Part shown: positions 9,601-63,036 of the stretch, one piece after another
Position numbering within the stretch: the first letter of the stretch is position 1
Layout: each line of letters starts with the position of its first letter
Source: Asterias rubens
Taxonomy: Eukaryota
Direction: 5' to 3'
Assembly: GCF_902459465.1 (NCBI RefSeq)
Contig: NC_047072.1
Span: forward strand, 16,740,001-16,804,000
Length of the DNA: 64,000 bases
Notes under the pieces: generated by a model
What the model saw: the letters and a program-made list of their open reading frames with translations, nothing else
The model's database searches: none
Told to the model about the DNA's origin: nothing
Program-made: the position numbers and the translations under genes

Positions 9601-10634
9601 GGTTCATCTTATGATTGTCTTGAGAGTACCCTACGGTGCTTTCAGTCCGTACCCTCCCCTCCCTCGGTGTTGTCTTAAACTCTTGGTAGTCCAAGATCTG
9701 TCAAATCTCGTCAGGATACTTGGCGGGATTTGGGGACCATCCAGGCCGGGCGTCCCTTTAACAGATTGTTTAGATCAAAACCGAGAAATTCCTTAACCAG
9801 TGAGAGTCTAAAAACCACAAAAAGTTTGAAATTCTTCACATTTTGAAGTTGGTTATTTAGAGAATGTTAGTGCCTTGTATAGTGTTGCCATTAACAAAGA
9901 GTGCCACGCCTTTATTTGGTACTGTGAAGACTTATTGCGGGAATAGCATAATAGACGTCTAGTTGTTAGACAGTCGGAATTATTTTAGGACGAATCCGAA
10001 AAAGGCTGTCTTCCGAGATTCCGTGGCGATTGGGCGACACAACGTTTGACCCAGACAATTATTTGAAATATTATACAACTGTCAATAAAAACACCAGAGA
10101 CACACAGACATGATAGAAGGAAATAATAATAATAATAATTGTTGAAGGATGAACGAGAAAACCCTAATATCTAGAAATATTTTAGCCTCATCTCTGCAGG
10201 CACCTCGAAGTATTCAGTACCAAATAGAACAGTTACTCATTGTTGGGCTGCATGGTTGAGCAGTCACATCTTCACACAGCATCGTAAAAAAAATTGTGTT
10301 GATTGAAGACGTTTGTACATACAGTGATTCATTGATGCTTGATTTAAAACAAACAACGTCTTGTAAGAAAGATTACGTGTATAATCCAGGGAGGTTGCCT
10401 CTTGTCGAATAGAGGAAGGGGCTAAATCAACCAATGACTAATGCACACAAACGATGCGTACAACTCCTACTGCGTTTCGTCAATGAAAATCTGTATCAAA
10501 TTATTTTAAGAGCCTCTCAAAAAGTTCTGCAACTCGTCTGATTTGTCTCGCTAATCCCCCAAGGTGAATGGAAACTCACCCTTCTCTCTTGCCGCTTGAC
10601 CCCTTCTGGCCCAACTGACTTGCGTTTCCTCAAC

Positions 10635-13284: not shown

Positions 13285-13630
13285 CTATGGCCCTTTTCGA
13301 AACCATGGATTTGGCTTTTGATTCGGCTTCAGGCTCCGTTCTCTTGTCTGAAGCCCTGAGGACGATTTCACAAAGAACTAAAGACTAGTCCTAAAGTTAG
13401 GACTAGTCCTAACTTAGGACTAGTCCTTGGAGATCTACAAACTTAAGGCTAGTCCTAAGTTAGGAGAATCTTGTCCTTACTCGAGATAAGACTAGTCCTA
13501 ACTCTTTGTGAAACCCATCCCAGGGCGTGTATGCAAAGCATGCGCAATTGTCAAAACAACCGCGGGGCCAAGCTAGCCTGAGCCGAATCCAGAGCCGAAG
13601 CCGAAGCCGTGGTTTCGAAAAGGGTCACTG
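13285..13630. mobile_element. GGCCCTTTTCGAAACC-type MITE interrupted by a nested hairpin MITE
   Basis: Termini GGCCCTTTTCGAAACCATGG and CCGTGGTTTCGAAAAGGGTC. The uninterrupted version lies inverted at ~60550-60716. Confidence 0.7.
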
Positions 13631-13784
13631 GTTCTATTGCAGACAATTTAATAAGTGCAGTTCGTGTATATGCACGTGTGAAAGTATTCGTAATAGTACA
13701 AATACAACTGGGCATATGACGAACTCGGACCATTTCTAACTATCAAAGACCGTCTGTTTTTTTTTTTTTTTTTTTCTTTAATAT

Positions 13785-29689: not shown

Positions 29690-31786
29690 ATGCAATCGTG
29701 ACCGTGTTTGATAAGATGGTCGAGTACAGCCTGAAGGATGATACACAGTCCCTCATGACGATGTCGTATGCTATGTAGATCTCGTTTTGAAGTCCATAAT
29801 CCAGTTTACGGCTGGGTCCTCAGCCAGGTGAAGGGCTTTGATGCCACCATCAAGGTGAGAGAGTGGGCAGTCATCTATCATGTGGCGCATCGTCTGTGGT
29901 TCTCCACAATCACAAAGCGGAGATGCAAGGTAGCCCCACTTGTGTAGGCTGCTGCGGCACGGCCCTGCGTCTGTACGAAACCGGTTTAAGACGCACCAAT
30001 GGCCGCGCGGGAGGTCCATTCCCGGAAGTTGGATGGTGGGGTCAGCGACCAGGAACTTGTGGGGGACGTTGGTGTGGTCTCGCCACCGTGTGCGCCATAG
30101 ATCTTCTGCTGTCGCTGCACTGTCCGGGACATTGGACCAGATTGGGTTTCTAGACTTAAGTCTAGGCCTAGGGTGGAAGTCAAGGTCTCTGAGGAGAGGG
30201 AGCTCAGGGTTGGATCGGATCTTACAGACCAGCCTAGATGTGGCTACCTCTCTTCGGATGTCTGGAGGGGCAATGTTGCTCAGGACTGGGAGCCAGTCTG
30301 TCTTTGTACTGCGAACGGCGCCAGTGATGGTTCTCATGGTGTTGTTGAGTTGGACGTCGACAAGGCCGGTGTGGACAGAATTCCTCCAGACTGGAGCACA
30401 GTACTCAGCCACTGAGTAGCAGAGGGCTATAGCAGATGAGCGGAGTGTCCTTGTCTTAGCTCCCCAGGTTGTACCACCGAGCATGTGGATCAAGTTGTTT
30501 CTGGTCTGGATTTTGGCAGCTACTTTCTGGAGGTGAGGTTTGAAGGTGAGTGTACGGTCCAGGGTGACGCCAAGGTAAGTCGGTTTGGGGGCGTGGCTCA
30601 AACGTTTTCCGTTGAGAAAGATGTCTAGCTCTTGTTGGCTTTTTGCATTGTGCAGGTGAAAGACACTGGATACTGTTTTAGCCACACTGGGCTGAAGTCG
30701 CCAGCGTTTACAGTATTCACTGATCTTTGCTATGTCATCATTGATAGTGGTGCCGAGGTCTTCAAACGTTCTTGCTTGGTGGGCGAGGCAGATATCATCA
30801 GCACAGATGAACTTTCGGCACATAGTGGCTGGGAGGTCACTTGTGTACAGGTTGAACAGGGTGGGTGCCAGTACTGATCCTTGTGGCAAGCCGTTCTTCT
30901 GCATTCTCCATGAGCTACAAGTGTCTCCCATATGGACACGAAACCGTCGTTGTTGCAACAGCAGTTCAACTATGTCAACGGCCCAGCGTGGTAGTACTTT
31001 GGAGATTTTGACTAGCAGACCTTTGTGCCACACAGTGTCATATGCAGCAGTTAGATCCAGGAAGACGGCGCCAGTCTTTAGGCCTTGCTGGTATCCGTTT
31101 TATAGTCCCTCATAAAACTGTTTCATCAAAACGCAACAATCATGATGGGTGGATTGCCGCCTGTCATTGGACATGAAGGTAATTAACCGTTTCTCCTTTT
31201 TTTTTCTTTTTCCTTTTTTTTTTTGAATTTTTTTATATTCATACTTGATTTGTAGTTCAAAGATTAATTAATATGTAAAACAAATAACTAATAATATTTG
31301 CATTTACGTATTGATGTTCAAACATTCTAAAATATGCATCCCTGTGGATACACTTCTTTCCATTGTTCAGGTACTTAAGATTTTCCCGTAGACTCTGTGC
31401 ACCTAATTGCTTGTGGTACATCCCGGTCTTGAGAACTTCCCTATGGAGTCATTTTATTTCTCCCTCATTTGTTTTTTCCCATAAGGTACCGAGTATGGGA
31501 ATAGTGTTGGCTCTTTTAAACGAAAAAAAAAAAAAAAAATTAATTATTGCTTAATATTTTCACTGTATTTTTTGGGTTGTCTAGTTGTTATTGTTTGGTT
31601 AATATATGTTTTCGTTTTTATTTCGGTAGAAATACGAACTTTGCTGGAGATCTTACCCGAAAAAGCCTCCGACATCAAATGCATCCTTAAAGTGATGGAG
31701 CCAATGGATGAAAGCGCAGACTTTGTGTACGTCGCAATTCACTTTGAATTCTACAACGAATTGGGAGAAAAATACATGGATGGGAA
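29690..31786 (+). pseudogene. NTF2/SnoaL-like copy C, disrupted by a LINE insertion in exon 2
   Basis: Exon 2 halves 29690-29756 and 31114-31178 rejoin to exactly 132 nt (DAIVTVFDKMVEYSLKDDTQSLIKLFHQNATIMMGGLPPVIGHE). Exon 3 at 31630-31786 is intact (157 nt). No exon 1 or exon 4 was found. Confidence 0.85.
29757..31103 (-). mobile_element. 5'-truncated non-LTR retrotransposon (I group, Ingi/Vingi-like), 1347 bp
   Basis: Uninterrupted RT frame from GAVFLDLTAAYDTVWH through LPQGSVLAPTLFNLY, CADD and YLGVTLDRTL to a C-terminal CDCGEPQTMRHMIDDCP zinc knuckle, with no RNase H seen. Stop at 29771 and a short 3' tail CATACGACATCGTC. TSD AGTCCCTCAT at 29747-29756 and 31104-31113. Confidence 0.93.
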
Positions 31787-48589: not shown

Positions 48590-50022
48590 ATAGTCTCATT
48601 CAGTCACATAATGATGTGTACCAAAACAGTAATGTCGGTGCTTGTAAATGTGATTGCCCGAATAAATATTATGAATATTATTAATGGAGCCGGTGGTTAG
48701 TGTGATCGGAGACACAATGTTGTCAAACCTGTGATACTTTACTCTGTAGTAAACATCCTTACTATGCCCCGCCCCCCCCCCACCTCCAACCCACCCAACC
48801 CCCTGTTTGCTACCATACTCACTTCACTGCTTTCGCAACACCGGTGTCGCATGCAATTATGTCCTCTATGCAATACTATCCGGAGCAAATTAGTGCATAT
48901 GCAATCGCGTCCGCACGGACGCTGCTGCATATGCAACTGTGTCTGTCCGGACACATTTCCGCCCCGTGCAAAACCGTCCTTGCAGTTAAACGCCCTTGGT
49001 CGACGGAACACGTTCGCCGTTTTTTGTACAAGTTAAGTGCATGTCATGTTCGGCCGTTGGGTATTCGCTACAATCATAAAACACGTGAATATTCATGCTG
49101 CATATACGTAGGGACAGTTCATGCACGCTCGCTTACGCGCGCACATACAATGTACATTCATGTATGCCAACCTGTACATAGCCCCGGACACGATTTCATA
49201 TGCAAAAGTGTCCCTATCGGACACAATTTTAATGCATCTGACGCTGGTCCATTGAACAATCGCCGTATTGTCCAAATGATACAAAGCGCTACAGGTAGAC
49301 ACTGCTCTAGAATTGCAAGGGTCGTGTGTTCGAATCCCACCTGAGTAATATGCCTGTGATATTTTTTTTTAAAGGACACGGGACGTACCGAGTACATGTA
49401 TATCAGTGGTTACACACATCGGTGTATGGGTAAAACCAAATTATGTTCTTTATCCCCGATTAACATATCTTATAATGCTATAGGTACGTATAATGCATCC
49501 AAGTACCTAAATAAGAATATCAAATAAAAGCATTATAATGCAACAGAAACGATCATCAGACTTGCTTTCATGACCTTGCGTTCGCTCGTCCTCTGTGTAA
49601 AATAAGTCTGAAATACGAAGGGGAAAAAATAGACAAATCGAACCCCTTTATATGGTCACCGGACCGAACAAAAGAAGGCCAGTCCAAAAATGTGTATGCT
49701 GATCTATACTAGTCGTTTGTTGAGGCTTTTGTTGCCGTTCATGAACCTGTGAGTTATGGATGGGTGGATATGTCTCATTCGTTGAACACCATCAACTACT
49801 TTGTACACTTGGGGTCACTGTGCGCATTGGTCTGTTGAAAAAATAGAGTGCCTTTTCTAAAGGATACAAATCGCTCGGGAAAATGCAACCAAGTCCTAAT
49901 GGTCCAATGGTTTTGTAAATATCAGCTCCTGTATTACAACAAAAACACTGCATAGCATTCATTCTGAAGTGAACATTCACTGCATGTTAATGATCTTAAA
50001 TGACGTGTATCCAAACAGTATA

Positions 50023-50595
50023 ATGTCGAAAATAAGTTGTCTACATTCTCGACCGGACTTAATCGCCTCGTGCTCGAGCCTTCTGCTAAGTGTATGGCCC
50101 TTTACGAAGACTGAGAGACTGCAGCTTTTGGAGAAAGAGAACTGCACCGGGTTCCCGTGTTCGTTGGTTCTCATTGACCAGAAAGAGAACCAACCCGATT
50201 ATGTTATAGGACATATTCGATTAGCCCCATGCCTCGAGCCACCAGAGGGCGTCTACTTAGAAGCACTGTGCATTGATCAAACCCAAACCGGCAGAGGTCT
50301 AGGCGTTAAGATGATGAAACACGCCGAAGAATACGCAGTTACAGCCCTCGGGTTGAAGCAAGCTTTTCTGTGGAGCGCAACTAGCATGAGGGGCTATTAC
50401 AGCAAGTTGATGTGGCAGGAGTACACCAAGTTCGGCATCACAACAGTCGGTGGAAATATACTCGGGCAATACAACGGAGCGACCACCTGGCGAGGAAACG
50501 TTCCTCCAACTGGCTGGGAGTCGGCGTACGAAGAATGCTACCACGAAGACATGAAAGACTATCTAATTATGACGAAATACCTAAAGAAAAACTAA
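50023..50595 (+). CDS. NAA80-like: GNAT N-acetyltransferase, NAA80/NAT6-like, intronless, ~190 aa
   Basis: LHSRPDLIASCSSLLLSVWP, FPCSLVL, VIGHIRL, VYLEALCI and the acetyl-CoA motif QTGRGLG..MM match the NAA80 family pattern. The start is taken at the first plausible ATG (50023); the track start at 49969 is GTG. Confidence 0.75.
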   Translation: MSKISCLHSRPDLIASCSSLLLSVWPFTKTERLQLLEKENCTGFPCSLVLIDQKENQPDYVIGHIRLAPCLEPPEGVYLEALCIDQTQTGRGLGVKMMKHAEEYAVTALGLKQAFLWSATSMRGYYSKLMWQEYTKFGITTVGGNILGQYNGATTWRGNVPPTGWESAYEECYHEDMKDYLIMTKYLKKN

Positions 50596-50743
50596 CTACT
50601 GACCGATCGCAGTAGGCAGTACCTGTATGTCGCCACGAAGTCTGTGTCGTCTGCTATCATTAAACTTGACTTTGCTGACTGTGTGTGACACAAGTATTTC
50701 AATTGCGGAGTTTAACATTGGATACTACGGTGGCCCACAACTG

Positions 50744-51040
50744 TCACGGCAAAACAAAAGCGCCACGGTAAAATAAAAAGCGCCACGGCAAAACAAAAAG
50801 CGCCACGGCAAAACAAAAAGCGCCACGGCAAAACAAAAAGCGCCACGGCAAAACAAAAAGCGCCACGGCAAAACAAAAAGCGCCACGGCAAAACAAAAAG
50901 CGCCACGGCAAAAAGAAAAGAGCCACGGTAAAACGAAAAGAGCCACGGCAAAACAAAAAGAGCCACGGCAAAACGCAAAGAGCCACGGCAAAACGAAAAG
51001 AGCCACGGCAAAACGCAAAGAGCCACGGCAAAACGAAAAG
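50744..51040. repeat. 20-bp tandem repeat, ~15 copies
   Basis: Unit (C/A)GCCACGGCAAAACAAAAAG, with variants clustered along the array. Confidence 0.93.
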
Positions 51041-53018: not shown

Positions 53019-56000
53019 GTGAGTACCTTTTGACTTTCGTGCTCAGGTGAGGTTTGCAGTAGCACAATGTGGAAATCTTGTTTAGGTACTGTTAGTTCTT
53101 AGAAGAACTCCCTGAAAACAATAAGAGAATACTGATCGAAACGTTGAGTTGTAAAGTTGTTGTTAGTCTCCTCCGAACCAGCACTAAACACGGAGGTAGA
53201 CTCAATGCACCGAATGACATTCCCCCTTTTTTATGCAAGTCGCCAGACACACAAGGCCTGAAGGCCACTTCAAGGTGTGGGCTACAAACAGAAATCCAGA
53301 GGCAGTTTCCACCTACTCCTATAGGCCTATAGGGCTAAAATGGGTTATCCCCCTTTACAGTCCGTACGGATGTAAGCTTGGGTATCATCAGTACGAAGCC
53401 TGGCCGGTAGAGCAGAAAGCACTACCTCCCCAATTTTACGTGGCAAGTGTCACGACTGGGATTCGAACCAACACTCTGCTGATCAAACACCAGAGCTTGA
53501 ATCCGGTGCTCGTTAACCGCTCGGCAATGACACAAGAGATTTACGCACAAGATGCTACCGCAATCCTGACCTGATTAAACTCCCACCATGCAAAGTTATC
53601 AATCATATTTATTGATGCTAATGTTCAGAGTAATGTGTATTCAATTATTATTCGAAAACAACAAGGGCCCAATTTCATAGAAATGCTTAAAGGCACTGAA
53701 CACGTTTGGTCATTGTCAAAGACGAGATTTCTCACTTGGTGTATCCCAACATTTCGGCTCAATTGGTCATAGACTTTGCAAGAGAATAATGAAAGAAAAA
53801 ACCTTCCTTTCTACATTACTTTGTGTGCTTTAAGATGCATATTAATAAAAGGCTTTAGCTGAAGTTGTTTATTGTTTGAGTGAGAAATACCCTCTTTCTT
53901 AAAAACTACGTTACTTCAGAGGGAGCAATGTTTAATAATATCAAAAGCTCTCCATTACTCGTTACCAAGTAAGTTGTTATGCTTACATGTATTACCAAAA
54001 TTGCCCAGTGCCTTAAAACACCTGAACATGTGTTATAACCAATAGCCTGCGTACCAGCTTATGAACATCCAGTTTGTATTTTGAGGTGCTTTGTAATGAA
54101 TTATGTGTTTGTGTATCATAATGTCGTTGGTTGGTTTCAGTGCTTATGTTATCCCCGTGCATTATAGAAAGTTCTTTTTGATAAAGCAATGTTTTCAATT
54201 GAAATTATTTAACTAAATGGTGTCTGCTTTTTGTCATGTCTGTTTTCTTTTTTTAACCATTTAGTATTTTATCTGGTATTCGTATTCTCATTCGATTATT
54301 GATAAGCAATTCGATTTGATAGGAAAATCTACTTGTGTAACTTAAGCTTTTAGTGCAAAGATAGTGAACACTATTGGTAATTGTCAAAGACCAGTCTTCT
54401 CACTTTATACCTTCAACCTCTTATTTTATACCATCAACCTCTCCCCATTACTCGTCACCAAGATAAGGTTTTATGCTAATAATTATGCGAGTAATTACCA
54501 ATAGTGTCCACTGCCTTTAAGCTTTCAGTGCAATTTAGAGTTAACCCTGCTATGATAAGATGTATCATCATACGTTGCGTTTTCTTTCGAACAAAATGCT
54601 GAAAAAACTTCTAAAATAATATATTAATAATATTATTATCCATTTTGTTTTATTCGTATGCAGACAATTTGTTGTGAAATACAAATTATCCAAAAACCTT
54701 TAAAGGAAAACGGGACACTATTGGTAATACTACTCAAAATAACTAGTAGCATAAAACCTCACTTGGTTACGAGTAATGGGGAGAGGTTGATAAGTATAAA
54801 ACATTGTTAGAAACGGCTTCCTCTGAAGTAACGTAGTTTTCGAGTTAGAAGTAATTTTCCACGAACTTTGTTTCGAGACCTCAGAATTAGATTTTGCGTT
54901 CTCAAAATCAAGCACCTGAAAGCACACGACTTCGTATGACCATAGTGACATGGATGTTTTTTCTTTTCATTATCTCGCAACTTCGATGACCAATTGAGTT
55001 CAAATTTTTCACAGGTTTGTTACTTTGTGCATATAATTTATGTTGAGATACACCAAGTGAGCAGACTGGTCTTAAACAAAAACATATTAAATCGTCTGCG
55101 ACATTTTTTGGCTACTTGCCAATAATAATTGGAAAAAAAAAAAAAAATGATTGAGCAACAGTGTGACCTAAGGGAAAGTACCAATGTGTTTGTGCCATTG
55201 AACCTTGGTCGTTTGGGTTTTATGAGGCCCGGGAAAATAATAAAGAACAATAGGTGTTTTTCTTAAACCTAGTCTGTGAATATAGTTCAATGACAGGTTT
55301 GTTACTTTGTGCATATAATTCATGTTGAGATACACCAAGTGAGCAGACTGGTCTTAAACAAAAACATACAAATTGTCTGCGACATTTTTTGGCTACTTGC
55401 CCACAAACATTGAACCTTGGTCGTTTGGATTTATGAGGCCCGGGAAAATAATAGAAAACAATAGGTGTTTTTCTCAAACCTAGTTTGTGAATATAGTTCA
55501 ATGACTTAAAATGCCCACCCACAATTTTTGGCGTACAGTTTTGGCGTAAACAATTTAAGTTGGTGCTTTGTCCCTGAATGCAACAATATTGCCCAATAAA
55601 CGGAAAATCAACAGTAACAAGTCAATAGGAATCAAAGATGGCAGATTCCATTGTCCAAAAAAAAGCACATTGTTGCTTGGTTTAATCAGATAGCTACACA
55701 AAACCGTCTTGTAACACGTTTATAAATATTATTCGTATTAGGATCAGTTTCTATAATAAGGGAATAACAGGGTAGCGACGAGTTCTTTGACGGCCGTTTA
55801 AAACCGGCAGGGTCGTTGCCGTGTCGGCTCGGGCCTTTATCACACGGCAACGACAGTTAGTATACAGTTAGTATACATTATAAAGAGTCTGTTTTTAAAA
55901 CTTAACACATCGTTCCGTCTCGGTGTCAAAGCGCATGTTGTTGTCTAGTTACTTATAATTAATATGTTTCTTTTCTCTTTCTTATTCTCATTTCAAGAAT

Positions 56001-59000
56001 ACTTCGAGAAAAAAAAACAGAAGACTGAGAGGTACGAAAACTTAAATTATATTCTTATCTTCCATAGCAATATCATTTTGAAATATATGATGTGTGTTTT
56101 TGAAAGCGTTTGAGTGCAATCTCGTTGGCAGGGGTAAACTTTTACACATCTATAACGGTCTGGGTGTTTATTGAATGATACAAAAATAAAACATTGAATG
56201 TCAACTTCACGAACAATCAAGATTTAACTTACAGATCTGTTGTCAATATTGCAACACTGTATAATATCGATAACACATAAGTTAAATCTGATGTATTGTT
56301 TTTGCTCGGCAGTTGAGTCTAATTGACATAAATCAATATTTTGTAGCTCTTTGCCCAATTAATTTCCATTACTCTTATACCAATGACTTGCTCATAACTA
56401 ACTCATAAAATAATTTTTAATTTTTCGCTACAGCAGTCAACGTAAAGACTATAGTATCAGATGATGTTCCTCCTATGACTGAACCAATTATGTGTCTATC
56501 GAATTGTTCGAATTCTATTATCCAAGTTATTCTACCAAGCAGTGAATCACAGCACGGTAAGTATTTAAGCTAGGAGGTTACCGCTTAGACACCTTTGGTG
56601 TATCCCAACATGTTCGTTATACCAAGTAAGTTGTTAGCTACTTTGAGGACTAACACACGTCCACACATTGGTTTTACTTTGAGGACTAACACACGTCCAC
56701 ACAGTGGTCTTTCCCCAGAACAAAGGAGTGTCCACGTGACTGCATCACAGAGGTAGTGCTTTACTGGGTTTCGCTTGTGAGGTCTTTTTAATAATGGAAC
56801 AACGTACCCAACCATTTTGTGTGTCATACTAAACTCTAATCATAGTTTATTCTTTTTATGTAAAACGAATCGTTGTGTTTCTTTGATGTGAATCCTGTAT
56901 TGTATACACTTTGTTTTATCTTTGCAGTGAAAAAGAAAACAGATGAAACTTTAACAGATGAAGTACCACACAGTATCCATATTGAGACATTTAGCATGTC
57001 CAATTGTCAAAAATGTGCAGTTCACATTGGTTCCTCTATCGGCAATGAATATAATGGTAAGTGGCAAATTTAAAACAAAGTGCAAACTAAACATTCCAGT
57101 TGTGTATCAATGTACGACATGCACAAGTCTAATGTTGCTGTAAGGTGACGTCACTTAGCCCCGCCCCCCCTCCATTGCCGCCATGTTTGAGGGTACGTGA
57201 AAGTGACAACTCACATGTAATCAGCAGTAATAGTCTATTAATTTTCACTTTCCTCTCCGTTGATGCTTGGACGCGCGATATGCAAGTGTGTTTCGTGCAA
57301 CCGTGTGGACCCCCCATTGGCCTTTTTGTTCATACTTTTTTTGCAACAGCTCCCTTTGGTTTTGAACACGTTTTTCAACCGTGGATACAGCCTAATTTGT
57401 TGAGCGTGTATGTCCTACTCACTCACGCACCACCGCCACACTACAAACTATGTACATTTCTTAAAGTAAAATCTTTTAAATCAACCTCCTCCAGCCCATG
57501 TTAATTTATCATTATAGGGAATTACTATGTCTGTCTACATGGACAGATATCCATGACACGGTTGTCACAGAAAAGACACAAAAAGACGATAAGAATATTT
57601 TGACTAGTTTTACTAAACGTTATTTTGGCCGGGTGCTTTGAATCAAGTGAGTTTTTTTTATGGGGATTTTTTTGATGGGGATTTTCTACTTTTTTTTGTG
57701 GGGGGGGGGGGGGTTCTCCCTCTTTTTCCCGTTTTTTGCTGAGTTCAGCAATATTATTTCTTATCTATAATATTCCTTCTTTTTGTATTCAGTTAACAAT
57801 ACAGGCTTAATGAAGTTCGATCTATCTGGTGATTCAAGTATGAAAACAACAACAAACAGACGTTGTAAGTAGCAGTTGTCTTTCATTCTTAAGTAATATT
57901 TATTTTACATGCTACAAATTTATGTCTCTTGGACATTTCTACAAAATACCTTTAAGAAATTTGTTTAACTGCTCGATAGCAACGGCAATGCGTGCACGTT
58001 TTCCAGAACACTACAATGCAACCAGCATCATGCCAATTATTAGTTATGAATTAGTGATAATCTTTAATAAGCTGTCATCATTTTTAACAACATTTAACTA
58101 TAGTTGAAAGAATATTCATTCAGGTTTTAACCCATCCTAAATACCGATGTGTGTTAGCACTGTATACTCAGTACATCCTGAGTTCTGTGGAAAAAAAATC
58201 ACATTCATATTATTCGGGTGGGATTCGAACCCACGACCTTTGACATTCTAGAGCAGTGTCAAACCATCTAGACCAACGAGATAGATAGAAGGAGTTCGAA
58301 TCCAATGTAAAACAAAACTAAATGAATAACATTTAACTATTTCTGAAAAGTGCCTGATTTCGTCGTGGGGTGATGCATTTACTGCATTTCTCTAAAGTTT
58401 GATATGACGCTTGATTAAAATAATGTTGAACTTCTCTTTTGTTTATACAGTCAAGTTGTTATTGATGTCAAGCTGGAGCAGAGACCACGTTCGATGCTGG
58501 ATCATGAATATTAATCTACCAAGTTATGTAGCAAATCAATTTTACCAAGAACATGTCAATGGTCTTATGTTAAAGATGTACAAGAAAAAGCATTTAAAAA
58601 GGGATTTCCATTTGTACACGTCAAATTGGCGTCTTATTTTATATCTGAGAAAAAAATGGTTGAAAATAGAAAAAGTTCCTCAAATAACAAGTTTGTATTC
58701 ACGTTCAGAAAACATTTCGGTACCTGCGTCTTTTACTTATGACATGGTTATAGCTAATGACAATATCAAAGACATAATATTACATTTAAACTCAAAGTTG
58801 AGGTCATTTCAAGATTCATTTACGGAATTTAATATTTCAGAATTAAATTATTTGCATCGCGGTGATTTACGTGTTACGTCAAAAAACTTTGAATCAGAAT
58901 TCGTTGAAATATTGAACACGGGAAAAAACAACTTAATAGTCGGCTTTATAAATGTAACACAGTGTACTTTATGTGACAACTTTATAGAACAATTGAGTGA

Positions 59001-59232
59001 AATGTTGAGAAAAGTTCAAGATACTAATCTAAAGAGTTTTATACTTGGCGAATTCAATTTGCATAACAGTTCGAGAAAGTTGCTTCTTTATGAGAAAAAT
59101 GTCATAGGTGCTCTGACAGATAATTTGTTTTTCCGACTAAGAACTGAAAGTGTTTTCATAGGAACCTCAATTCTATTTGATGAAGTTATAACAAATGACA
59201 CGCGTGTGTTTAGTTACGATCATGGAAGTTAA
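53016..59232 (+). CDS. Uncharacterised ~380-aa protein: basic N-terminus, two RHIM-like repeats, SAM domain and degenerate LINE-type APE/EEP endonuclease domain
   Basis: Model exons 53016-53018, 55998-56031, 56434-56556, 56928-57056, 57793-57864 and 58451-59232. All are GT-AG and phase-compatible (0,1,1,1,1), with an open frame of 1143 nt. SAM-like segment WSRDHVRCWIMNINLPSYVANQFYQEHVNGLML..YKKKHLKRDF. EEP-like motifs in order: ISE, FESEFVEI, LIVGFI, FILGEFN, LFDEVITN, YDH. The last four exons are more secure than the first two. Confidence 0.65.
55011..55505. repeat. Local tandem duplication (~210-280 bp unit) that includes a MITE end
   Basis: CAGGTTTGTTACTTTGTGC...GGCTACTTGCC and TTGAACCTTGGTCG...ATAGTTCAATGAC each occur twice in the same order, with a ~70-bp indel between the copies. 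Confidence 0.8.
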
Positions 59233-60549
59233 CATTAAAAACGAAAAAAATAAACATTGTGAAGATACTGCAGGTACATTATGAAAAGCAAACGGAAGTG
59301 TAACGTGGATTTTAGAATTTTAAATTTGAATTTAGACTAATGTTAATTCAGACCAAAGCTACGAAAACCAATAACTTTTGATTTAAACATCTTTCGTCGT
59401 AGCAAGGTTGACTCAGCCTTACATCCTTTCGGGGTAGTTAAAATGAGTACCATTCCAAATTTGGATTGGAGTGGGCAAAACAGAAAATATATGGACTTTT
59501 TATATGGAAACTAACAGGCAATATGTGATACATTAAATAAAAAGCTACACAAGAGGCAACATTGTTTTGTTTTGTGGCAAGGTCAACTCAGCCTTACATC
59601 CTTTCGGGGTAGTTAAAATGAGTACCATTCCAAATTTGGGATGGGCAAACAAGAAGATATTTTTGGATCGTAGAGTTTTTGTGATGAAGATGACAATGTT
59701 TTTTTAATTGAATTGAATTGAATTGAATAGTTGAAGTCGATTATATAATCATACATTATTAAGCGGATGAGTCCGTCCATTTCCGAAATTGGCAGTCGCT
59801 AACTGTGACTGTGACAGGTCTATTTTGAAAACAAAACGAAAGAACAAACCTTGGAGTTGATAATGATACGTTGTGAGATTTGCATTGAGCAGTCTTTTCT
59901 TCAAAGAATGTGCAAAATGTTGTGTAGTCATTATTCAATAAAGAGAGTGAAAGACAAGTATTTTGATTACTGGTTTCACGTTATTATTACCTTTTAAGTA
60001 ACTCACACAGTTTGAAGATATTGATAGTAGAAAGCTTCCCTTAATAAAATATTACTTCCTGAAGTGCTGTAGTTTTTGAGAAATGAGTAAGTCCAACCAT
60101 CCTTGAACGGATGCATTGAAAGTCTCCCATTGCCTTTGTTCATTATGGCCGTTTCGAAACCACGGCTCAGCCCGGTCAGTGTGTAGGCCCCTATTGATCG
60201 TGCAGTAAGGTCGTCTCCTCGTGTACAAATCAAAACATGAAAACATGCAAACATAAAATAACCAGGAAATGCGTGTTTCTCAGTATATCACTCTAAAACA
60301 TACCTTGATATCGTCGGCCAGCCTCTGTTGAACAGCCACATTGAAACCAAGCACGTGGATGGGCTTAAAGGAGACATTTTGCCTGAAGTTTACAGATAAA
60401 AATACACCGTGATCAACGTCAAAAATCCCCGCCATTACAAAACTGAACTACATAGGGCGTACTCCATAAAACAAAAAACGGGTGACCGGGGGGCGGGGGG
60501 GGGGGGGCGGTGCACACGTGGCGGACGAGTCAAACTACCTCTACTTCCT

Positions 60550-62466: not shown

Positions 62467-63036
62467 CTTTCTCATGGTATTATACCAGTTAGAGTTTGAT
62501 TCACATGAAGCAAGCTAGATCAAGGGACTATAAGATGATTATAGACCTTTATCATGGTATTATACCAGTTGGAGTTTGATTCACATGAAGCAAGCTAGAT
62601 CAAGGGACTATAAGATGACTATAGACCTTTCTCATGGTATTATACCAGTTAGAGTTTGATTCACATGAAGCAAGCTAGATCAAGGGACTATAAGATGACT
62701 ATAGACCTTTATCATGGTATTATACCAGTTAGAGTTTGATTCACATGAAGCAAGCTAGATCAAGGGACAATAAGATGATTATAGAACTTTCTCATGGTAT
62801 TATACCAGTTGGAGTTTGATTCACATGAAGCAAGCTAGATCAAGGGACTATAAGATGATTCTAGACCTTTATCATGGTATTATCCCAGTTAGAGTTTGAT
62901 TCACATGAAGCAAGCTAGATCAAGGGACTATAAGATGACTATAGACCTTTATCATGGTATTATACCAGTTAGAGTTTGATTGACATGAAGCAAGCTAGAT
63001 CAAGGGACTATAAGATGACTATAGACCTTTATCATG
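62467..63036. repeat. 80-bp tandem repeat, ~7 copies
   Basis: Unit CTTT(A/C)TCATGGTATTATACCAGTT(A/G)GAGTTTGATTCACATGAAGCAAGCTAGATCAAGGGACTATAAGATGA(C/T)TATAGAC, period 80. Confidence 0.93.

Follow-up and report, generated by a model that had tools for sequence, protein, structure and literature searches.

Gene structure and transcripts

The DNA considered here is a stretch of 64,000 nucleotides from the genome of the starfish Asterias rubens (contig NC_047072.1, positions 16,740,001 to 16,804,000 of the forward strand), hereafter the window, and positions given below without further label are counted from its first letter. Near its downstream end lies what is very probably a real spliced gene, in which a SAM domain has been joined to a dead and partial endonuclease derived from a long interspersed nuclear element (LINE), the whole being kept by selection. 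The encoded protein has three parts: a disordered N-terminus with (I/V)(Q/H)(I/V/F)G motifs, a SAM domain of the SAMD9-like type and an endonuclease C-terminus of ~128 residues. Residue numbers follow the product of the terminal exon (e5), read as 259 full codons from 58453, and the coordinates of exons and domains are collected in Table 1.

The terminal exon belongs to an open reading frame (ORF) of 273 codons (58411-59232, forward strand) within DNA whose G+C content is 0.30-0.32. At this local composition the stop probability per codon is 0.08, and 274 open codons would arise by chance with a probability of ~1e-10, figures that bear out the long open terminal exon in AT-rich DNA described in an earlier note made from the letters of this sequence. 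Transcript evidence comes from Logan contigs of four public runs (X1, X2 and X7 among them), which were aligned to positions 53600-59500. Record 4 of X1 (1712 letters) runs unbroken across 56445-56555, 56927-57055, 57792-57864 and 58451-59464, and record 20 of X7 (862 letters) splices 110 letters of upstream sequence onto 58451, so that the exon start proposed earlier is exact, with an AG acceptor at the point where the contigs of both runs join. The GT..AG joint 56555>56927 is present in all four runs, and exons e2 to e5 all show GT..AG borders when the contigs are read against the genomic letters. Since the contigs skip GT..AG introns, they are taken to represent spliced RNA, even though the RNA nature of the runs is only guessed, and to this extent they bear out the splicing proposed in the earlier note.

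That note had also placed four in-frame exons upstream of the terminal one. Three coding exons are verified, whereas the fourth and most upstream (e1) has no in-frame ATG past a stop at 55956 and is best read as a putative 5′ untranslated region (UTR), with an out-of-frame ATG at 55964 opening a short upstream ORF. The contigs carry unplaced letters 5′ of e2 (32 in record 6 of X2, 65 in record 4 of X1), and their alignment probably reaches 56432 because e1 would end in AG.

Table 1. Exons and protein domains of the SAM-endonuclease gene, in window positions.
Feature	Position	Strand	Basis or remark
e1, inferred 5′ UTR exon	55978..56031	+	GT donor after 56031; extent uncertain
e2, coding; first in-frame ATG 56475	56434..56556	+	RNA contigs, A. 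amurensis alignment, tblastn of P0002
e3, coding, conserved RHIM-like motif	56928..57056	+	contigs and splice sites
e4, coding, variable linker	57793..57864	+	X1 record 4; splice sites
e5, terminal coding exon, 259 full codons from 58453, stop TAA 59230-59232	58451..59232	+	ORF and contigs
SAM domain, SAMD9-like type, residues 3-72	58459..58668	+	Pfam, PDB, AlphaFold2 model, relatives
Middle region, residues 73-128, weakly constrained	58669..58836	+	dN/dS 0.4-1.0; weak hhalign
LINE-endonuclease-derived region, residues 129-256	58837..59220	+	BLASTP, hhalign, genome matches, Foldseek
3′ UTR, to at least 59464	59233..59464	+	colinear extension of X1 record 4

The SAM domain

The first part of the terminal exon had been described as SAM-like, a description that is upheld by sequence matches, by structural comparison and by the relatives found. 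With a score of 16.9 (E 0.007), the Pfam family SAM_2 falls short of its cutoff of 20.5 bits, as it does in all full-length relatives, and the weak PDB sequence matches of this region are SAM domains without exception. An AlphaFold2 model was built from a 58-sequence alignment that included SAM and LINE homologs, with a predicted local distance difference test score (pLDDT) of 85.9 overall and above 90 over residues 1-70. Residues 3-72 of this model superpose on the SAM domain of PHC3 with Z 12.5 and a root-mean-square deviation of 1.1 Å over 70 of 70 residues, and the top 47-50 structural matches are SAM or PNT domains only; this segment is therefore predicted to form a SAM fold.

A profile built from seven family members was run against 1.8 billion representatives, and its first 80 positions match the SAM domains of SAMD9-like proteins from Acanthaster planci (E 1e-21), Patiria miniata, Glandiceps talaboti and Ptychodera flava. 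One of the SAM domains reached in this way, that of P0057, is recognised by SAM_1 with E 1e-12. The similarity to the Acanthaster domain amounts to 38% identity (E 1e-17) and continues into the post-SAM helix. A. rubens itself has a SAMD9-like gene, with a frame of 1637 codons (G000:C12:11668496-11673406, minus strand; L029 997-5907), the SAM domain (C12 11673107-11673367) at the start of the frame and ubiquitin-like exons upstream. No similarity was found between the N-terminal exons of the family and the exons upstream of this A. rubens gene, so that only the SAM domain links the family to SAMD9-like genes.

An endonuclease remnant of LINE origin

Searched in six frames with the product of e5, the genome returned two full-length matches, one at the present locus (on sequence C12) and one on C15 with 78% identity, together with 44 partial matches, of which 43 fall at residues ~125-250 and the remaining one covers SAM residues 5-72. 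Many of the 44 sit in open frames of 983-1032 aa, and three such frames carry an N-terminal Exo_endo_phos domain with RVT_1 downstream, which identifies them as LINE ORF2s. In BLASTP, the e5 product matches two of these ORF2s with E-values of 4e-18 and 3e-17 (30-34% identity, residues 130-249 against LINE residues 112-233), and hhalign of the family against 13 LINE endonuclease domains pairs residues 129-256 with LINE residues 111-245 at a probability of 98.9% (E 3.9e-17). The starfish LINE profile in turn aligns with the human L1 endonuclease over LNINGL, QETHL, IY-APN, GDFN, KIDH and SDH. The collinear motifs listed in the earlier note reappear in these alignments, where FESEFVEI corresponds to IESCFIEL, LIVGFINVTQ to VIIGIVYKPP, FILGEFN to YIMGDFN and LFDEVITND to LIDNILTND. 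Judged by this homology, residues 129-256 derive from the endonuclease of an ORF2 of a LINE of the apurinic/apyrimidinic endonuclease (APE) type. No Pfam family recognises the C-terminal part of the e5 product.

The endonuclease had been thought to be captured in full, which proved wrong, as hhalign detects no more than ~128 of ~235 endonuclease residues, those at the C-terminal end. The complete endonuclease/exonuclease/phosphatase (EEP) fold of ~230 residues is represented by the equivalents of LINE residues 111-245, and in the hhalign comparison LINE residues 1-~110, with the Asn of HINARSL, the Glu of SETWL and the GGGVALY hairpin, have no aligned counterpart in the family. The N-terminal ~45% of the fold would thus be gone, and with it the Asn and the GGGV hairpin, and probably also the Glu. 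A restricted local hhalign does recover the proposed pairing of ISE with the metal-binding Glu, by setting DNIKDI...FNISE against KNISNI...IGISE (LINE residues 51-74, 24 columns), but the result is merely suggestive: the score of 12.4 (P 0.06) was equalled in one of 30 column shuffles. If the pairing is real, ~36 residues (TWL...GGGVALYIKQ) were deleted before the strongly matching part, and the middle region may preserve a trace of the endonuclease's first helix and ISE strand. A reverse transcriptase is absent after the stop, as the earlier note had stated, for a whole LINE ORF2 used in tblastn matches nothing here beyond the endonuclease stretch (58840-59199).

The structural comparison agrees with the sequence result. 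The best PDB matches of the model in Foldseek are the TRAS1, L1 and R1Bm endonucleases and TDP2 (E 2.5e-3 to 3e-2 over 124-146 columns), and in VIA-align the R1 endonuclease and ExoIII reach Z 7.0-7.1 over alignments of 111-125 residues (R1, Z 7.0 and 125 residues). As LINE endonucleases were present in the alignment from which the model was built, these scores confirm the sequence result and add nothing beyond it. The expectation of SAM and LINE endonuclease matches from modelling and profile searches was therefore realised, with the qualification that the endonuclease fold is partial and its scores modest.

Copies, orthologs and selection

In the 417.6-Mb genome of A. rubens there are two copies of the SAM and endonuclease unit, at the C12 locus and at LOC117299140 on C15, and the C15 paralog also has introns and exons unrelated to transposable elements. 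The absence of dispersed, transposon-like copies is thereby confirmed. The ortholog of the C12 gene in A. amurensis (P0002) is 95% identical over the last exon, and the window is colinear from 48.7 to 64 kb with the A. amurensis locus (L025), two upstream GNAT acetyltransferase genes included. Intron-free complete coding contigs (L026, L027 and L028) were found in GCA_014845345.1 (paralogs P0005 and P0006) and in SRR1427060 (P0081). The tree of the terminal exon supports only the two Asterias ortholog pairs, its deeper order being unresolved; the types of N-terminal exon suggest that the duplication predates the split from the third source.

Selection was assessed on the last exon as the ratio of non-synonymous to synonymous substitution rates (dN/dS), in pairwise Nei-Gojobori comparisons and not by codon-model likelihood. 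The SAM domain (residues 1-72) gives 0.28-0.40, with 0.72 in the sp3-vs-sp4 pair, the middle region (73-129) gives 0.4-1.0, and the endonuclease-derived part (130-259) gives 0.26-0.36 at dS 0.39-0.82, with Fisher p values of 2e-5 to 2e-7. The family alignment contains 56 invariant columns, and some of its invariant patches (LLLYEKN-I--LTDN-F-RL and EVITN) are foreign to LINE endonucleases. With two copies, conserved synteny, a frame kept open across species and dN/dS ~0.3, the claim of a spliced host gene retained as a host protein holds. In the case of the syntenic single-copy orthologs with dN/dS below 1 that had been expected, the synteny and the low ratios were found, but the A. rubens genome contains two copies instead of one.

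These data bear most directly on the alternative that a neutrally exonised LINE fragment has produced a chimeric transcript with a chance open frame and a functionless protein. The decay of the catalytic motifs would agree with such an origin, as would the relaxed middle region, the C-terminal part that matches no Pfam family and the deletion in the A. rubens copy that took the start codon and the basic N-terminus (see below). Against it stand a frame that has stayed open in two paralogs and at least 4-5 sources at dS of up to 0.8, the low and significant ratios of precisely the LINE-derived part, the invariant columns with their new family-specific patches and the negligible chance of an accidental ORF, and altogether we regard neutral exonisation as distinctly improbable. 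The endonuclease piece is better described as an old exapted fragment under purifying selection.

The active site

The catalytic positions were mapped through the hhalign of the family with LINE endonucleases and the alignment of starfish LINEs with the human L1 endonuclease. The Tyr of YRPP is Asn in the seven close relatives, and the Thr-Arg of PTR are V/A and F/L. Across the family, the Asp of GDFN reads E/K/E/E/D/D/D, its Asn N/N/N/N/Y/H/Q, the Asp of LID D/D/D/D/H/Y/Y and the terminal His of SDH H/D/D/D/D/D/I. Every alignable position of the catalytic set (Asn, Glu, Tyr, GDFN, Thr, Asp and Asp-His) is accordingly lost or variable, and the degenerate active site announced in the earlier note, including the loss of YRPP, is confirmed by the replacement of Tyr, Thr and Arg and by the variation at the GDFN, LID and His positions.

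Two details of that proposal need correction. The change of the GDFN Asp to Glu is not fixed but polymorphic within the species, since position 59052 reads C for A (GAA to GAC, Glu to Asp) in contigs of X1 and X2, as it does in the 99%-identical P0001. The equation of YDH with SDH is ambiguous: in hhalign its Asp falls on the leading Asp of TDISDH, and in relatives the His is replaced by Asp, Ile or Val. A distant relative, P0009 (ENA assembly; E 3e-44 against the profile), likewise has a SAM followed by an endonuclease and retains RPP, GDFN and TTRIT, with Asp in place of the Tyr of YRPP; the fusion seems to be the same, at a stage where decay has gone less far. A search with P0009 as query returned no further relatives.

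With catalytic residues replaced or varying among orthologs, catalysis, and with it nicking activity, is very unlikely. The idea that the domain is still an enzyme, a nuclease or phosphodiesterase whose active site has been remodelled, could appeal to the acidic residue retained at the ISE/ISD position, to the Asp or Glu common at the GDFN position and to the terminal Asp, which is widely kept. But such an enzyme would have to work with ~110 N-terminal fold residues undetectable, the Asn and the GGGV hairpin among them, with Tyr, Thr, Arg and His replaced, with GDFN and LID residues that differ between orthologs and with a 59052 codon that varies within one species, a combination that makes it very improbable indeed.

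The N-terminal region

The exons ahead of e5 code for a low-complexity region, in which one motif, N-C/S-x-x-C/S-x-(I/V)-(Q/H)-(I/V/F)-G-x-F-x-x-N, is well conserved and a second one less so. In the A. rubens copy, the RHIM-like stretch of e2 reads SNCSNSIIQVIL, with IQVI at 56520-56531, and that of e3 reads SNCQKCAVHIGSSIGNEYN, its core being VHIG (57020-57031). The tetrads of orthologs are VQIG (P0002 and P0005), IQFG (P0003) and IQVG, twice (P0081), and IHVG also occurs. The RHIM core has the consensus I/V-Q-I/V/L-G (PMC7375649), to which most family members conform and from which the A. rubens copy departs with VHIG and IQVI. Pfam RHIM gave no match at E up to 10 with full-length relatives or their N-termini, and PDB sequence searches with the N-terminus returned no RIPK1 or RIPK3 fibril chains, only chance matches to basigin and CXCL12. 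The RHIM-like repeats noticed earlier thus stand at the level of the motif, lack profile support and are imperfect in A. rubens, and the likeness can be taken as a lead only. Some APOBEC-like Pfam matches (E 0.002-0.005, below the cutoff) were dismissed as noise.

In two SAMD9-like or uncharacterised proteins of Ptychodera flava, P0054 (residues 64-87) and P0032 (residues 102-125), a SAM of this subtype is preceded by NVQ(I/V)G in the N-terminal part, which suggests that the pairing of an RHIM-like motif with this SAM may be recurrent among ambulacrarians. A second haplotype of e3, present in all four runs, carries six linked differences within 56969-57018, three of which turn K-C-A into N-S-V immediately before VHIG.

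The basic N-terminus ascribed to this gene is found in the A. amurensis ortholog, whose start lies within the second exon and reads ATGATG, with a Lys-rich stretch behind it. From the A. rubens copy it is gone, a deletion of 33 bp at 56448/56449 (relative to L025 ~10010-10045) having taken the ATGATG and the Lys-rich codons. The deleted form is matched without differences by RNA contigs (record 6 of X2 and record 16 of X7). From the first in-frame ATG at 56475 the A. rubens product has 354 aa and no basic N-terminus, against 375 aa in A. amurensis, and the 380-aa model of the earlier note suits the relatives and not this copy.

Neighbouring features of the window

The intron before e5 contains, at 58131-58327, a repeat of high copy number, one end of which is tRNA-like (GGGATTCGAACCCACGACC) and whose contig depth exceeds 10,000 in all runs. 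It is probably a tRNA-derived short interspersed nuclear element; ARAGORN predicted no tRNA in this repeat at 58.2 kb. Upstream of the gene, a block of very high-copy repeats (53797-55372) shows a summed contig depth of 1e4 to 1e6 and many rearranged joints in the contigs. Downstream, a sequence of ~90 bp in the 3′ UTR region (59397-59485 and 59574-59728) is doubled as compared to A. amurensis, both pieces corresponding to L025 ~13500-13656, and a tandem array at 62467-63036 (80-bp period, 7.1 copies, 95% matches) is apparently a single unit in that species (L025 16119-16211). The two tandem GNAT (Acetyltransf_1) genes lie at ~48684-51040 and have A. amurensis counterparts of 197 aa and 201 aa (L025 1911-2504 and 4052-4657). 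A fragment of a LINE reverse transcriptase on the minus strand (30377-31069; 27% identity to ORF2 residues 618-848, E 2e-19) is unrelated to the gene.

Interpretation and proposed mechanism

The best explanation of the data as a whole, to which we give a probability of about 0.8, is that of an exapted LINE endonuclease fragment in a lineage-restricted starfish gene with two paralogs. Several observations weigh against it. The A. rubens copy has lost its ancestral start codon and basic N-terminus and has H in place of Q in the conserved tetrad, and this C12 paralog may be drifting within A. rubens; the comparison with A. amurensis, with 13 non-synonymous and 8 synonymous differences, is too shallow to speak of constraint there. 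The protein search gave no RefSeq protein for the C12 locus. As to structure, the EEP likeness of the AlphaFold2 model is partly built in through the LINE endonucleases of its alignment, a model from seven family members only reached a pLDDT of 41.5 and was unusable, and the endonuclease matches are modest (Foldseek E 2.5e-3, Z ~7). A prediction of a three-copy complex of SAM residues 1-80 scored 0.00, which counts neither way.

That the unit is part of a transposable element, either a SAM-carrying LINE family or a LINE that inserted recently and was mistaken for an exon, might be read from the LINE homology itself and from the repeat-rich surroundings, where contig depth becomes very high (53.8-55.4 kb and 58.13-58.33 kb). 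It is hardly credible in view of just two SAM-endonuclease copies, both interrupted by introns and joined to exons of other origin, of the missing adjacent reverse transcriptase in the search with a whole LINE ORF2, of a nearest genomic LINE that is merely 33-34% identical and of the syntenic A. amurensis ortholog. Scarcely more tenable is the descent of the C-terminal part from a cellular EEP enzyme of the TDP2, APE or CCR4 type, for although TDP2 and ExoIII appear among the structural matches with similar scores, all sequence matches with recognisable context are LINE ORF2s with RVT_1 or fragments of them, and the LINE-specific motifs E-x-x-F-I-E-I, I-V-G-x-x-Y-R-P-P, G-D-F-N-x-N-L-L and L-I-D-N-I-x-T-N-D are shared.

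On the preferred explanation, exaptation of a LINE fragment, the history of the gene would start with a LINE copy that interrupted, in frame, a SAM-first terminal exon related to that of a SAMD9-like gene. The reverse-transcriptase part of the inserted copy would have been lost later, and the endonuclease remnant would have been left as a structural or binding module. The resulting protein could be a small SAM-mediated adaptor or regulator, most plausibly one that forms homo-oligomers or hetero-oligomers with SAMD9-like proteins, a mechanism that we put forward tentatively and that is rather less than an even bet. A more specific reading, which we consider unlikely, would make it a candidate innate-immune adaptor of echinoderms, in which the RHIM-like amyloid motif and the SAMD9-type SAM would couple to SAMD9-like STAND sensors and the dead endonuclease remnant would act as a bait or decoy, recognising LINE or viral factors or nucleic-acid ends. 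The sole pointer towards a role in innate immunity or in the surveillance of transposons, as suggested in the earlier note, is the SAMD9-like type of the SAM domain.

Comparison with known systems

No described protein that combines a SAM domain with a LINE endonuclease came to light, in keeping with the earlier note, and the named database relatives are all entered as 'uncharacterized protein'. The starfish family fits the class of host genes exapted from transposable elements, within which host genes derived from LINE ORF2 are very rare; as far as the accessible text of the sources goes, essentially one endonuclease case is named, BCNTP97 (PMC12129022, PMC4161310). In the case of BCNTP97 (p97Bcnt/CFDP2) of ruminants, PMC12129022, citing Iwashita et al. 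2006, describes an RTE-1 LINE endonuclease that was recruited as coding sequence after gene duplication, so that both are host genes with a recruited LINE endonuclease. The endonuclease of BCNTP97 is reported there as intact, whereas what can be recognised in starfish is the C-terminal ~55%, stripped of its catalytic residues; the partner is BCNT in one case and SAM in the other, and host phylum and LINE family also differ. The two recruitments are independent events. Other LINE-derived host coding sequences, some of them in terminal exons, are L1TD1 and the L1 ORF1p fusion isoforms of MYL4, RFX5, NUP42 and USP4 (PMC12129022; PMC4161310), which come from the RNA-binding chaperone ORF1p, whereas the starfish piece comes from the endonuclease of ORF2.

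The APE endonucleases of LINEs (L1, R1Bm and TRAS1) share with the starfish protein a homologous C-terminal beta-alpha-beta part of similar fold, but the starfish piece is truncated, immobile and devoid of the catalytic set and of an attached reverse transcriptase. With its fold incomplete and its catalytic set lost, the family is not a LINE endonuclease in the functional sense. The SAMD9/SAMD9L-like STAND proteins of echinoderms and hemichordates have the same SAM subtype, and in both groups the SAM domain starts a large terminal exon; two SAMD9-like relatives from Ptychodera also have an N-terminal VQ(I/V)G before the SAM, as in the starfish family. However, the AlbA_2, NTPase, TPR and ubiquitin-like parts of SAMD9-like proteins are absent from the starfish protein, which has 354-375 aa as compared to 1600-2300 aa. 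The starfish family stands outside the SAMD9 family, SAM being the sole shared part. RHIM adaptors (RIPK1, RIPK3, ZBP1 and TRIF, and viral M45 and ORF20) have a similar tetrad in a disordered region, with Asn, Cys or Ser before it and Asn after it, but the starfish family shows no profile-level similarity to them and the A. rubens copy reads VHIG.

Taken against these systems, the starfish family is an independent, older, duplicated and selected example of the reuse of a LINE endonuclease, and indicates that a partial and catalytically dead endonuclease fold can persist as a protein module. Even if its function were trivial, it would be a clean case of exonisation followed by the loss of catalysis. 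The SAMD9-type SAM behind an RHIM-like tetrad offers a testable entry into SAMD9-like signalling in echinoderms, where RIPK1 homologs have been reported as not found (PMC12119088), and, were the immune-adaptor reading true, part of a transposon would have been turned into a sensor module of cell-autonomous defence in a phylum reported to be without them.

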